DNA of 64,000 nt from positions 4,278,001 through 4,342,000 of the forward strand of contig CP075493.1 of assembly GCA_021613535.1 (NCBI GenBank), given 5' to 3'. This stretch comes from Adineta vaga (taxonomy: Eukaryota; Animalia; Rotifera). Positions 4,257 through 64,000 of this stretch are shown in pieces. Made by a program: the position numbers and the translations under genes. Position 1 is the stretch's first letter, and each line of letters starts with the position of its first letter. Under the pieces are notes generated by a model that had not been told where the DNA came from, did not search any database, and worked only from the letters and a program-made list of their open reading frames with translations.

Positions 4257-6090
4257 ATGAAACGTGTTCGAAGTACAGATGAAGTATTCGAAAAACAAAC
4301 AAAAAAATGTAAATTAAAATAATTTTATTCAGAAAAATATTCGTTTTTTTTTAAAATTTTAGTGACAATATTAAAGTAAATATGAAAAGTATTGTTCTCC
4401 TTTTTTTTTATAAATCTATAAATATTCTTTTCGTTTGTTACAATCTAGTCGAGTTATTTCATATATCGAACAATTACCGAATGAAATTTTTTATGAAATA
4501 TTTACTTATCTTGAATGTTGTCAATTATTTGAAGCATTTAATAATCTAAATCAACGTTTTCAACACTTATTATCTAGTTCATATCTTTCATTTCATGTTC
4601 AACTTGTTTCAAATTCGATATCTATTGCTGAATATCGTGCAAGGAATATTATTGTGCCAAATAAACATCGTATTCTTTCACTTTCATTATTGAATGGTTG
4701 GTATGATGATCAAATCTTTTCTTTACTCAATATTGATTCATCATTTAATCAACTTGAAACATTAGTTCTAAAAAATATCAATGCTGATCAATTGATTCCG
4801 ATACTTTCTAATCTAATTTCTCTTACTCGACTTTTTTCTCTAACTATTTATTTGAATGATGTTCATCAAGATCTTGGAAATATCTATCAATTAATCTTTC
4901 ATTTACCTGTATTAAAATCTATTCGAATTTTAGCTAGAAAATATCCTATCTTTACTGAAATATTATCAACTACGAATCAACCATGTACTTCTATTGAATC
5001 TATGACCATTAATCATCGTTGTACTTATAGTATTATTCAATCTTTCTTTTCAATAACTCCACATCTATCTCATTTAATTTGTGAAGAATTATTATCTTCA
5101 AGTTTACTTTATCCATCAATAGTATTGTCGAAGTTAACACATATTTCGATTGGTAATTGTAAATTATCATTTACACAATTCATTATTTGTATTAAAAGAC
5201 ATTGTCCAAATGTTCAAGTCTTACGATTAATAACATCAAATGATATTACTTATCTTGATATTGATCGTTGGGAACAAACAATTCAGAAATATTTATCTCA
5301 CCTACGAAAATTTCATCTTCAATATTATGCAACGATTACTCAACATTTTTCATTCTTGCCACATTTATGGCAAATTAATGGAATCATTTCACCATTTTGG
5401 TTAAGTAAACAATGTTTATTTGAGTGTCTATTTGATATGAATAATCCTTCTAATGGTCAAATGGTTTATTCAATAAAATATTCGAAATCATACGTAAAAA
5501 ATCATCCATTAAATAGAGATAAAGTTAAATTATCCTTTTCTATGTTAGCTGATTGTTTAGATTCAATGAAATGTAATGATATAATTGCAAATAATCTTGA
5601 AAAATATCTTCTACAAAAACGATTTAATCATTTGAAAATTAATTGTCAACAAATATCGATTAATACCCTGATTAAACTTGTATATTGTCTATCGGAACTT
5701 TTATCTTTACAAATATCGAATTTATCCGTATCAAAATTGAGAAAGTTATCTTCGTATGAGAAAGAAATCGTTCGAATTACTTCGAGAAAGAGCAAAATTA
5801 TTGAAATCTCTCTTAAACAAATCATTGAATTCGAACAAGTTAAATTTTTCATCGATCTTTGTCCTCGTATAGAATATTTAAACTTAAATTGTCTACATGA
5901 TATCAATTTAGAAATACTTATTCGAAAAATACTCATTGAAAATATTTCTCATCTTCGTGAAGTATGTTTTCATGATTGGAAGGGTAATATGAATGATTTC
6001 AAAGCTATGATTAATCATCAAGAACAGTTTTGTAATTACACTATGAAATCTTTTGATAAGAAGATTTCTCTGTTTCGAAAAATGTATTAA
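4257..6090 (+). CDS. F-box / LRR-like protein, tandem paralog (exons 4257-4308, 4363-4375, 4449-6090)
   Basis: F-box motif IEQLPNEIFYEIFTYL; same phase-1/micro-exon/phase-2 5' layout as the upstream paralog; shared NLDSSF/NIDSSF and YxLIF-LPVLK blocks. Confidence 0.85.
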
Positions 6091-58002: not shown

Positions 58003-58437
58003 ATGGCATCATCTAGTCTTGAATCTCTTCGTAAATATACTGTTAATATTTCAACAAATGAAGCACTTGAAACATTAAATCAGCAATTACATCGATTACT
58101 TGCCGATACTCATATAGATTTTAATAAAAGAAAAAAAATGCTTTTACAATTGGAACGAAAACACAATCAATATCGGCGTTTATTTGAACAAAATGATTAT
58201 CATAATCAACATAAATTAGCTGATAATACAAATCTTATTCGACGCATAAAAAAGAAAATTATTGAAGACGATCGTCAACAACGACAACGAAGACATGCAG
58301 AACAAGAACAAACAGCAAGTACAAATTGGTCTCCTGGATATACGGTTATTCTAGTAGGTGGTGCACTTGCCGGCGTTCTATGTGTTGCCACATTAATAAT
58401 TATGATATTAAATAATTCAAAAGAAAAATATGTGTAA
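58003..58437 (+). CDS. Small coiled-coil protein with C-terminal TM (tail-anchored-like), function unknown
   Basis: Intact 144-aa ORF; charged helical body; hydrophobic VILVGGALAGVLCVATLIIMIL near the C-terminus. Confidence 0.6.
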   Translation: MASSSLESLRKYTVNISTNEALETLNQQLHRLLADTHIDFNKRKKMLLQLERKHNQYRRLFEQNDYHNQHKLADNTNLIRRIKKKIIEDDRQQRQRRHAEQEQTASTNWSPGYTVILVGGALAGVLCVATLIIMILNNSKEKYV

Positions 58438-58944: not shown

Positions 58945-60369
58945 CTAAAAGAACCATTCAGTTTTGCTCCATAAAATGCAATAACCAAAAACAATACCAC
59001 TACCGAATATACATGCTGTTGTCAACAGTGAACCAAGAAGTAAATGTGTCGTGCCCGATATTCCTTGTCCACTTGTACATCCACCTGCACATCTTGCTCC
59101 AATAAATAAAAGAAATCCTCCGAGAACACTAGCTAGAACGTTTGTTCCATTTTCTGGTCCTAACGGTATAGTATGAGATAGAGTCGATGATAAAGCACTA
59201 CCACCGATAGCAGCTACACCAAAGAGAAAGATTGTATAATTTTCGAGTCCAGAACTTAAAGAACTCAATGATGGTAAGGCTCGTCCAATGGATTTAATTC
59301 GACATACTTGAGCAGCTAATACAGAAAATGCGGATGATGCTCCTAAAGTCATTTCCAAAAGAAGTATAAAGAATAATTGTAGTAGACCAACACCTGCACC
59401 ACAAAGAGATGGTGGCCAAGCAGCCATACGAAAGACGGATCCAATCATACTGTCTGGATTCATAAAGCTTCTGTCTCGAAAATAATAATCTAAATCTGAT
59501 CTCCAAGGTACGAAGAATTCCAAGCCAATAGCTGCACCAAGGAAAACAAGACCAAATATTGAGTGAAGAACAACACTTGGAGTATGTAATATATCAGAAA
59601 GACGACGAAATACAGGTGATGTGGATGGTAATCTTTCTTTTGTGATACGATCATGAATTACAATATAATAGAAGAAAGTGCCTAAAAGTGCACCCAGACA
59701 AGTAAAGAGTGAATTAAAGATACCGGAACCTCTAGAAGCAAAAAATATGTAGAAAATCGATGTTCAATCTTAGGGAAAGATCATCAATATTTACACTTGA
59801 ACAAATATTGTTCCAGGACAACTACCACAGATGACCATTCCTAAACCAATTAGTGAACCTCCAGCAATATAATGAATAACTACAAAAGGAAATTCAGCAT
59901 ATCAACAAAAGTTTTAGACAAGTTTCACTTACTTCCTCGTCGACAATTGTATTCAATATCATCAACAAGAACTTTTCCATAAAGACTTTTACGAACAAGT
60001 TCAAGTATTGCAACGCTTAACATTGATACGCCAACAGCAGCAAGAAACATTTTCAGCATAACAAAACGTTGAAAAACCATTTGTTTACGAATCGTTGGTG
60101 TTAGAAAGACAGTTGCTTTATTCATTAGGAAGCCAAATAAAACTCCAAGAATGATTACACTTAGAACAGTACGAATTATCTTCACCATATTTTTATTTTT
60201 AGATTGACCTTGAGTACTAACTGGATGCTCAACCATTTTTGTTTTACTCGTCTCCCTAACAAATCAAAAAAAAAACAAACAAATAGTTCAAGTTTAATTA
60301 AAATCCAACTGATGCTAAATCTTACCCTAACTTTTTTTGTTCTGCTGGTAACATTGAATCGTTTTCCAT
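58945..60369 (-). CDS. YeeE/YedE (TsuA-like) sulfur-compound transporter, copy 1, 4 exons
   Basis: Polytopic membrane protein with GMVICGSCPGT and GARCAGGCTSGQGISG motifs; ATG 60369 is spliced in phase to the 59925..60236 exon. Confidence 0.85.
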
Positions 60370-61183
60370 TTTGATCACAATTTCAACTGTGATATATTCT
60401 ATAAGTTATTTGCCAATCTTACGTTGTAATATCGTTTACGATAAAAAAATCGATAATGATTGAAAGAGAGAAAAAAATCGTTCGTATAAATCTGAAAGGA
60501 TGAATATACTTGTACAGGTAGGAAGAACGAAGGATAAAATAATAATAATATCGTATTTGAAAATAATAGTTCTTAGCCTTACCTGGATACGTTTGCATAA
60601 GATAAACTTGATTTGATCATTCTTAGAGGACGTTTTTATAATTTCATTAAAGAAAAGAAAATCTGTTATGTCAATGGAAAATAACAAGTTTTATTTTTGA
60701 ATATAAGCATGTTGTTGCTACACAAGAAAACATTCACTAAATTGCGACACATTTCATATGAAAGCAAGGTGAATTTGATATTTTATCTGATGCAACGCCA
60801 TTCGTGTAAACACATATTAATAGATACTTATCAAATACACATTTGGCAAAGAATCAGCGAACGACGTAAATAAATTAATTATAGCAGTTGGCAATATATT
60901 CTAGTTTTCTTTTGCTTTTTTAGAAATTAGAACTATTGATATTGAAATTATATACCAATAGGAAACAATTACGACGAAATATGCACGACTATTTTGATTT
61001 TTCTCATAGAATATGCACTGATATTTGATTCTATTTTCAAGATCATGATACTCTTGTGATAAATAAATTGAAAGTGCACACAAATTTGAAATACAATATC
61101 CTTAGATATAGATTGAAGGTGAATATATTATAATAAATGTCAATCGTTAGAAAAAAAAGCGTTCTGTCTATTTGCATATGATT

Positions 61184-62580
61184 TTAAAACAACCATTCAT
61201 TTTTACTCAGCGAAAAAGAGAAAGCAAAAATAATACCACTACCAAATATACATGCTGTTGTCAAAAATGAACCGACAAGAAGATGTGTTGTACCTGATAT
61301 TCCTTGTCCACTTGTACATCCACCGGCACAACGTGCACCAACAAGCAGAAGAAATCCTCCGAGAATACTAGAAAGAATATTTGTTCCATTTTCTGGTCCT
61401 AATGGTAAAGTATCAGATAGAATCGATGATAAAGCACTACCACCAACAGCAGCCAAAGCAAATAAAAGAGCTGTATAGTTTTTTAATCCATAGGTTAAAC
61501 CAACCAATGATGGTATCTTTTGACCAATAATCTTAATACGACATAATTGTGCAGCTAATACAGAAAATGCAGATGATGCTCCTAATGATTTTTCAAGGCA
61601 AAGTATGAAGAAGAATTGAAGAAGACCAACACCTGCACCGCAAAGCGATGGTGGCCATGCTGCCATACGAAAGACAGATCCGATCATTCTTTGTGGATTC
61701 AAATTACTTCGGATTTGAAAATAATAATCTAAATCTGATCTCCAAGGTACTAAGAATTCTAAACCAATAGCTGCACCAAGAAATAAAAGACCAAGTATCA
61801 AATGAACAATAATACTTGGCGTATGTAATAAATCAGAAATACGACGCAGAACGAATGATGTGGATGGTAATTTTTCTGTGGAGACACGTTCATGAATAAT
61901 ACCGTAATAAAAATAAGTACCTAGAAGACCACCTAAACATGTGAAGAGTGAATTCACGATACCAGAACCCCTACAAAATACAAGAACACGAGAATATTAT
62001 TGTTCATACGATGATCTAGCTACCTACACTTGAATATATACTGTTCCTGGACAACTACCACAGATGACCATTCCTAGGCCAATAAGCGAACCTCCAACGA
62101 TATAATGTACAACTACAAAATAGAATATGAGTTAGTTGAGTACGTTTTTGTTCTCTAGCAAGAAAGCTTTGACTTACAATTTCGTCGACTATTGTGTTCG
62201 ATATACCCATTGATAATTTTTCCATATAAAACTTTACGAAAAAGCTCCAGTAACGCAACACTCAACATTGACATTCCCACAGCAGCGAGAAACATTTTTA
62301 ACATAGCAAAACGTTGAAATAACATTTGTTTACGAATTGTCGGTGCCACAAAGACTGTTCCTTTATTTATTAAAAATCCGAATACAAGACCAAAGATAAT
62401 TGAACATAGAATAGTAAAAATATTCATCAATATGCTTATATTATTGGAATGACCATGTGCAGTGACTGGAGTGTTTTTCTTACTATTTTAAAAGTAGAAT
62501 TAGTTTTTCTAAAAAAAATAAACTTACTCTAAATTCGTCTGTTGTGATGATAACATCGGATCATTTTCTTTATTAGCCAT
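61184..62580 (-). CDS. YeeE/YedE (TsuA-like) sulfur-compound transporter, copy 2, 4 exons
   Basis: Tandem paralog with the same motifs and intron positions; ATG 62580. Confidence 0.85.
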
Positions 62581-63787
62581 TTGATCAGATTTAATATATT
62601 CTTTTTGTTGTTTATCAGTTTCAATTTTCAATATCACCCATCAAAACAATTTGTTAGCGCTAAAAAGAAAGAAAATAATATTTTCTTATTTATTACGAAG
62701 TATAAATTATACGTCATGATGACAAGGTATTTTTTGTTCTATCTGATGTAATGCTATTGGTTACAAATAAATATTTATAAGTAATGAGAGGTGTGTGTAA
62801 AAACAGAACAAAATTGGGTACTTAACCTCATATATATTTTGCTGAAAGAAAGAATATTTTTCTAGATTATAATGATAATGAATGCTGGGTTCAAAGATAT
62901 ATGCTGAATAGATTTTCTCAAGTGTTCTTTATAGTAAATAATTATCATCATGTATGCATTAGGATATACTATGCTCAGAAGAAAGAGAAAAATAATATGA
63001 TGGCGTTAGTTGCTATAGTGAATATTTGTCACACCCTCAAGGATATTGACAGAAAAGTCACATGAAAATAGAAAAAAAAGCATTTTCGTTTTAAGAACAA
63101 AAAACATCCATTAAAAGTATTATTCATGTTTTGATATATAAGTACTTATATGTATAAATACAACAGCTAAACGTTTTCTTTTGACAGCAACTTTTTTTTT
63201 ATCCTTAAGTTTCCATTAAAATGAGAAAAAGTACATTCGATATCAAAAATACAAGTAAAAGAAAAATAAGGATTTATTATAAATTTCAAAAATTAACAGA
63301 TGTCTAGATATTTTTTTTAAATTAAATTCTATCATTTAAAGAATAACGTTAATTTTATTCAAGTAAGTTTCGATCTGAAAAAAATACGACAGATCTGCTA
63401 GCGTCATTTCACATTACTCGAAGGGGTTCCCGTTGAAATTTTTTTTTCTTCTGATGCAATGTAGGTGATTTATGCTAGAGAAGATAAGAAATTGTCCTAT
63501 GTCGTTTTTTTTCTTTCTCATTGTCGACATCGACCAAAGACAAATGGTAAACTATATTTTACTGCATTATTCAATTGTTTTACAATTTTAAAAACTTCAT
63601 ATCTAAATTCATAGAGCTCGCGTAACTATCATAATTTTACTTAAATATATGAATAATAATCACAAGATAGAAAGATATCTTTTGGATAAATAAAAAAGAA
63701 ACAAATGAAGCGTAGCAATATATGACATATAATATGGATAGAAAATATATCTTTTTCTCTCTTATTTGAGATTTTATACTTTAGATA

Positions 63788-63812
63788 TTCTATTCTATTC
63801 TATTCTATTCTA
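63788..63812 (+). repeat. (TTCTA)5 microsatellite
   Basis: Read directly from the sequence. Confidence 0.85.
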
Positions 63813-63828
63813 TTAATCATTAAAATCA

Positions 63829-64000
63829 ATGTCGAAACATTTATTTAGACAGGTATTATTCAAAGAGATATATTTGTATATATATATATATATTAATCGA
63901 ATAAATTCTTATTACAGTTCTTCGAACATGAATCATCAACATATACATATTTATTGGCTGATTTAACAACAAAAGAAGCATTAGTTATTGATCCTGTTGT
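63829..64000 (+). CDS. ETHE1: Persulfide dioxygenase ETHE1 (5' part, truncated by the window end; intron 63853-63917)
   Basis: Spliced MSKHLFRQ|FFEHESSTYTYLLADLTTKEALVIDPV matches the conserved ETHE1/PDO N-terminus (FRQLFE..SxTYTYLL.D....EA..IDPV). Confidence 0.82.

Follow-up and report, generated by a model that had tools for sequence, protein, structure and literature searches.

The closest described relatives of the locus analysed here are two kinds of bacterial YeeE/YedE channel. In the YeeE/TsuA type (StYeeE, PDB 6LEO; YeeE-YeeD, 8K1R), Cys293, Cys91 and Cys22 are arrayed across the membrane, with Cys22 facing the partner protein YeeD, which is reported to be indispensable in vivo for uptake by YeeE (PMC11073785). 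In the split YedE1E2 type (PmpA/PmpB-type), each half carries one essential cysteine and the two together import zero-valent sulfur, which is then oxidised by a co-expressed persulfide dioxygenase; TsuA-type YedE3 shows no such import (PMC10812762). A yeeE-yedE-pdo2 operon under BigR control is also known (PMC7315123). YeeE/YedE proteins have been reported to occur in eukaryotes (PMC11073785). Our literature search found no study on the function of these eukaryotic proteins, and no paper joining YeeE with rotifers among the matches listed. Here we analyse a stretch of 64,000 nucleotides (the window, C1:4278001-4342000) from Adineta vaga, a bdelloid rotifer, from an assembly of 100.8 Mb in six contigs with ~30% GC. 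Two tandem YeeE/YedE genes in this window stand head-to-head with a gene for the persulfide dioxygenase ETHE1, here called ETHE1-1. With a probability of about 0.5, we read the locus as a pair that is coupled in function and eukaryotic in origin, made up of a fused two-cysteine YeeE/YedE channel in two tandem copies and an ETHE1 that lacks an N-terminal extension.

Both YeeE/YedE (Sulf_transp) genes are intact and on the minus strand; gene A encodes 391 aa in 1,176 nt and gene B 393 aa in 1,182 nt. ETHE1-1 runs off the end of the window, and with the remainder taken from the genome sequence it has six exons encoding 239 aa (window 63829-64830, equal to L002 5830-6831). The first-pass annotation had named two intron-bearing YeeE/YedE paralogues and one ETHE1, diverging across ~1.25 kb. 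These identities are borne out by Pfam, PDB matches and exon reading, and the two start codons lie 1,248 bp apart. The coding features are as follows.

58945-59731, minus strand: last exon of YeeE/YedE gene A; 261 aa plus stop; motifs WPP…LGASS and GGCTSGQGISG; PF04143 at 57.6 bits
59795-59879, minus strand: 85-nt exon of gene A; encodes the GSCPG motif with the StYeeE Cys91 equivalent; splice sites read
59933-60236, minus strand: first recognised exon of gene A, ATG at 60236; motif FGFLMNKATVF, with Phe in place of StYeeE Cys22
61184-61970, minus strand: last exon of YeeE/YedE gene B; 261 aa plus stop; PF04143 at 65.8 bits; PDB matches to YeeE only
62028-62112, minus strand: 85-nt exon of gene B; GSCPG motif
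62178-62434, minus strand: exon of gene B with the first transmembrane helices; FGFLINKGTVF
62528-62580, minus strand: predicted first exon of gene B; MANKENDPML…, a hydrophilic N-terminus similar to that of A. steineri P0003; GTAAGT donor
63829-63852, plus strand: exon 1 of ETHE1-1; MSKHLFRQ; donor GT at 63853; ATG preceded, five codons upstream, by an in-frame stop
63918-64000, continuing to 64062 outside the window, plus strand: exon 2 of ETHE1-1; junctions predicted
L002 6119-6319, 6379-6561, 6608-6724 and 6782-6831, plus strand: exons 3-6 of ETHE1-1, predicted, past the window end

Intron positions and phases, read from the sequence, are identical in genes A and B (…RRG|, phase 1; …FVQ|V, phase 2), with canonical GT-AG borders. 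The 85-nt and 787-nt exons are equal in length, and the last exons are 75-76% identical. Gene A may have one more exon upstream, as the A. ricciae gene does. The splice models, which are predicted, are backed by the annotated orthologues P0008, P0003 and P0200, the last with junctions that agree with those predicted for ETHE1-1. They are also consistent with P0004, an uninterrupted open reading frame (ORF) of 437 aa in a relative, whose 1.7-kb contig must come from spliced RNA. Searches were run with the window exons one by one, and annotated orthologues served as full-length stand-ins for the spliced proteins.

Membership in the family is supported by profile and by fold. Both last exons score above the PF04143 cut-off of 27 bits. 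The fold, which in StYeeE is multi-helix and pseudo-symmetric, was tested on the A. ricciae orthologue P0008, which stands in for the A. vaga protein and is 79% identical to the last exon of gene A. Its AlphaFold model (predicted local distance difference test, pLDDT, 89.9; predicted template modelling score, pTM, 0.87) matched only YeeE entries in the PDB: 6LEO was found with an expectation value (E) of 6e-8, probability 1.00 and TM scores of 0.60/0.73, and the next fold had E 0.02. The equivalents of the StYeeE pore cysteines Cys91 and Cys293 (family motifs GxCPG and GGCxxG) are kept in both genes (GSCPG and GGCTSGQG) and almost throughout the clade described below. The rotifer proteins differ from StYeeE in having only 16-18% identity to it, a hydrophilic N-terminal extension, and Phe or Tyr at the Cys22 position. 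Phe or Tyr also occupies that position almost throughout the eukaryotic clade, and it is non-Cys in all but one of the sampled eukaryotic-clade sequences and in alphaproteobacterial split relatives. No TusA/YeeD domain (PF01206) was found in a six-frame search of the whole genome, in which a 70-residue domain broken by introns could escape detection; the control was positive in 10 of 14 reference genomes.

The cysteine pattern is thus that of YedE1E2, one per channel half with no third, YeeD-facing cysteine and no YeeD partner. The chain is not: YedE1E2 consists of two half-size polypeptides, and the rotifer channel is a single polypeptide of 391-393 aa. Because the Cys22 equivalent is missing and no TusA/YeeD was detected, the rotifer YeeE resembles the two-cysteine YedE1E2 importers of zero-valent sulfur more than TsuA.

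ETHE1-1 is of the eukaryotic kind (type I), neither CstB-like nor type II. For both exons 3 and 4 the best PDB match was human ETHE1 (4CHL), followed by Arabidopsis ETHE1 and bacterial metallo-beta-lactamase (MBL) proteins in an order that differed by exon, with glyoxalase II far lower. The motifs THVHADH (HxHxDH), PGHT and FTGDALL match human mitochondrial ETHE1 residue for residue, the His/His/Asp iron ligands included. GRTDFQQG is likewise shared, and the catalytic cores are of equal length. Unlike the human protein, ETHE1-1 begins at the core without an extension, is a second copy beside an extended paralogue, and adjoins a YeeE gene. The first-pass annotation saw no obvious mitochondrial presequence, and this holds: the protein starts MSKHLFRQ after an upstream in-frame stop, its orthologues are likewise 239-240 aa long, and it is probably not mitochondrial.

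The haploid A. vaga genome has three YeeE loci and two ETHE1 loci. The second ETHE1, at 3.33 Mb (C1:3334374-3335452; L009 4374-5452), has five intron positions equal to those of ETHE1-1, plus a basic, presequence-like N-terminal extension of 26 aa, and is probably the mitochondrial copy. A word search with it brought up bdelloid proteins 239-240 aa long, among them the YeeE-linked ones of A. ricciae and Rotaria socialis, and the next best named matches were animal ETHE1s. The two rotifer types joined each other in a tree, weakly (97/0), and fell far from the MBL-rhodanese neighbours of bacterial YedE pairs. Because of the five common introns, this grouping and the affinity to animal ETHE1s, we take ETHE1-1 to be a duplicate of a eukaryote-type ETHE1, whose N-terminal extension would have been lost before the Adineta/Rotaria split.

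The YeeE genes, too, have eukaryotic relatives. A word search found close ones in bdelloids only (Adineta, Rotaria and Didymodactylos), forming two subfamilies. Profile searches extended the family to oyster, crinoid, starfish and hemichordate (with sea cucumber added by cluster look-up) and, outside animals, to fungi, an oomycete, a labyrinthulid, an amoebozoan and transcriptome entries. The statement of the first-pass annotation that these are not standard animal genes is therefore only partly borne out, since the family occurs in several other animal groups. The eukaryotic proteins share the fused, two-cysteine form of the rotifer channel, and in a maximum-likelihood tree they make one clade (100/98), apart from the sampled bacterial split pairs. 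Within it, bdelloids form a long-branched clade of their own (100/100), which unites gene A with A. ricciae P0008 (100/100); a further clade holds the other animals (96/93). For this tree the two bacterial halves were set side by side; the groupings were unchanged with the half order corrected.

The nearest prokaryotic relatives are adjacent pairs of half-size genes, the best in Alphaproteobacteria. By Pfam, the first gene of such a pair matches the C-terminal half of the model and the second the N-terminal half, opposite to the domain order of the eukaryotic fused proteins. A separate observation concerns eleven bacterial loci (L015, L017, L023, L031, L058, L062, L066, L070, L081, L082 and L093), a biased sample since they were picked as same-frame ORF pairs. 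In 10 of the 11 the second half-gene is in the same frame, starting a few to ~20 codons past one stop (TGA, TAG or TAA, near position 5500); L081 has no recognisable start. Fusion would here be one mutation away, yet it would place the C-half before the N-half, the reverse of the eukaryotic fusion.

Introns separate bdelloids from the other animals as well. Six intron positions are common to oyster, starfish and crinoid, and the bdelloid genes have none of them; the bdelloid last exon of 261 aa covers four of the six. The …FVQ|V|GSG intron is also present in the third A. vaga YeeE gene (I4U23_006010, at C2:1098027) and is therefore older than the bdelloid duplication. Trees and introns together rule out a recent bacterial origin of these genes. 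As for their source, we lean slightly towards transfer from an intron-poor eukaryote over animal descent with complete intron turnover; a tree forcing bdelloids and other animals together was not rejected (approximately unbiased (AU) test, p = 0.185).

Among the other animals, the YeeE-like gene of the oyster Saccostrea cucullata (L011 1-7939) follows, 2 kb downstream, a HIF1A-type bHLH-PAS gene that shares its strand, possibly by coincidence.

The divergent ETHE1-YeeE pair has been kept in two bdelloid families. It recurs in A. steineri, A. ricciae and three assemblies of R. socialis, with spacers of 1.2, 2.2 and 0.9 kb respectively, and there the ETHE1 partners are Lactamase_B genes of 239-240 aa standing head-to-head with Sulf_transp genes. 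Synteny across species thus exists within bdelloids, the only animal examples found here with ETHE1 beside YeeE; in oyster, starfish and crinoid the pair is not present. The first-pass annotation had proposed an operon-like module either retained or reassembled in a eukaryote. This distribution agrees with reassembly. Retention is contradicted, as the ETHE1 is of eukaryote type with five introns in common with its paralogue, and the YeeE genes lie inside the eukaryotic fused clade. The pair arose within the bdelloid lineage, where an ETHE1 duplicate came to adjoin a YeeE gene, and is no operon relic.

The same two families are neighbours in bacteria, as the first-pass annotation had stated. 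A CstB-like MBL-rhodanese gene is directly upstream of the split YedE pair at 24 of 75 bacterial genome loci (32%) and, among metagenome loci of 5 kb or more, at 25 of 45 (56%); a type-II-like dioxygenase replaces it at three alphaproteobacterial loci. At the one fungal locus examined, in Aspergillus multicolor (L099 10001-13771), the YeeE-like gene has as neighbours a gene resembling type II persulfide dioxygenases (PDO; 4YSK, E 2e-28) and a SLAC1/TDT-family gene; this trio looks like a fungal sulfur cluster. The family pairing thus recurs independently in bacteria, one fungus and bdelloids, three kinds of organism that between them use three classes of dioxygenase. This recurrence is our chief ground for regarding the adjacency in rotifers as functional rather than due to chance. 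The rotifer locus nonetheless differs from the bacterial yedE-pdo operon in several ways. Its genes have introns and are divergent, its channel is fused with the halves opposite to the bacterial gene order, its dioxygenase is of another class, and no ArsR/BigR-type regulator was seen among the neighbouring genes.

In the coupled pair as we picture it, the channel would move reduced or sulfane sulfur (zero-valent sulfur of the polysulfide/persulfide type, or thiosulfate) across a non-mitochondrial membrane, with the sulfur relayed over its two cysteines. Sulfur in the cytosol would appear as glutathione persulfide, which ETHE1-1 would oxidise to sulfite; the dioxygenase would thus act on the cytoplasmic side, as in the bacterial module. 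The classical mitochondrial pathway would fall to the second ETHE1, the one with the presequence-like extension. We infer the substrate, the direction of transport, the localisation of both proteins and any co-regulation. A more specific form of the proposal, to which we hold only tentatively, would make the locus the bdelloid animal counterpart of the YedE1E2-persulfide dioxygenase module. In it, a duplicated, cytosolic ETHE1 that has shed its mitochondrial presequence and a fused two-cysteine YedE would be co-regulated from their shared spacer, so that sulfane sulfur or thiosulfate could be taken up or disposed of at a membrane other than the mitochondrial one.

Several observations weigh against coupling, and most of them fit another account in which both genes are functional, with independent regulation and use, and their adjacency is a historical accident within a conserved synteny block. 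The pair sits in a wider conserved block (Urb2 … ETHE1-YeeE … LIM) in which Urb2 is kept throughout and LIM usually, so its own conservation could be passive. The spacers of five bdelloids, 0.9-2.2 kb long, have almost no sequence in common when aligned. At one R. magnacalcarata locus (L007 8297-9006, minus strand) the linked ETHE1 lacks annotation and has decayed: exon 2 is interrupted by an in-frame stop, and exons 4 and 5 are missing. The YeeE gene beside it is annotated as intact. No ETHE1 was found within 10 kb of other bdelloid YeeE copies, nor within 10 kb of the oyster, starfish and crinoid YeeE genes. Two further points touch the proposed mechanism. The likeness to YedE1E2 is one of shared features. 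Several annotated invertebrate ETHE1s likewise begin at the conserved core, so that the missing extension is weak evidence of a cytosolic location. Against accident stands the scarcity of the genes: with three YeeE and two ETHE1 loci per haploid genome, chance adjacency is roughly estimated at ~1e-3 or less. The meeting of the same families in many bacteria and in Aspergillus, with three dioxygenase classes, also argues for selection on the pairing. We regard incidental neighbourhood as possible, though less probable than coupling.

The first-pass annotation proposed a bidirectional promoter in the spacer. The features of the spacer are as follows.

62581-63828, no strand: intergenic region of 1,248 bp between the divergent start codons
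63706-63716, minus strand: 11-bp motif GCTACGCTTCA, ~110 bp upstream of the ETHE1 ATG
63789-63815, no strand: pentanucleotide (TATTC)n run, directly upstream of the ETHE1 ATG

A 10-bp core of the motif, CTACGCTTCA, is common to all three Adineta species, with A for the first G in A. steineri; Rotaria sequences differ. The motif has one match in the window, and at least one match arose by chance in 32 of 100 shuffles. As a regulatory element, this Adineta-specific motif is not significant by itself.

A further alternative follows the naming at NCBI, where some eukaryotic relatives are labelled 'thiosulfate transporter TsuA-like' and others 'Sulphur transport domain-containing protein'. The channel would then be a TsuA-like thiosulfate transporter, serving either to take up thiosulfate for its sulfur or to export what sulfide detoxification leaves as its end product, and general sulfide metabolism would be the only link between it and ETHE1-1. 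Sulfide oxidation in sediment-dwelling invertebrates yields thiosulfate as a major end product, and the family does occur in oyster, echinoderms and a hemichordate. The StYeeE fold and the two conserved pore-lining cysteines fit as well. We nevertheless consider this unlikely, given the low identity to StYeeE, the missing Cys22 equivalent and the failure to detect any YeeD/TusA, YeeD being the partner reported as essential in vivo (PMC11073785).

That the locus is a relic of a bacterial yedE-pdo operon, transferred whole and given introns later, is very improbable: bdelloids do hold many foreign genes, bacterial operons of such content exist and a likely foreign ORF lies nearby (below), but the proposal is already contradicted by the affinity of both rotifer ETHE1s to human and animal ETHE1s and their distance from CstB-like bacterial neighbours, by the agreement of the two A. 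vaga ETHE1 genes at all five intron positions, and by the place of the YeeE genes in a fused eukaryotic clade apart from bacterial pairs of reverse half order.

The surroundings add no further sulfur gene to the pair among those sought. A rhodanese next door, which the first-pass annotation had held in prospect together with sulfide:quinone oxidoreductase (SQR), did not appear: no rhodanese-domain match lies near the window, the nearest on the same chromosome is at 9.8 Mb, and SQR was not searched for. Another rhodanese-domain match, at C2:1151748-1152074, is 53 kb from the third YeeE gene. The long ORFs of the next ~20 kb encode a MACPF-like protein, a RING protein and two proteins without a Pfam match. 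The first of these, an intronless ORF of 482 aa (L002 8484-9932, minus strand; window 66483-67931) 1.7 kb downstream of ETHE1, matches PF22693, 'Fungal MACPF-like domain', at 74 bits and is a possible foreign gene. On the other side of the pair are a LIM-domain gene (57296-56923, minus strand) and a 144-aa ORF (58003-58437, plus strand) with no Pfam match and a hydrophobic C-terminal stretch; the A. ricciae annotation has a LIM gene and a 144-aa product in the same order.

To our knowledge, the membrane proteins that move thiosulfate or sulfane sulfur in animals are poorly known. The system described here is already present in public annotations, unnamed, and caution is advised with the automatic label 'TsuA-like thiosulfate transporter' for the eukaryotic clade. 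The locus gives a testable hypothesis, that of a two-cysteine channel feeding a non-mitochondrial ETHE1. If true, such a YedE1E2-like module would be the first functional assignment for eukaryotic YeeE/YedE proteins, and it would be a case of functional gene clustering that arose de novo in an animal genome and not by operon transfer.

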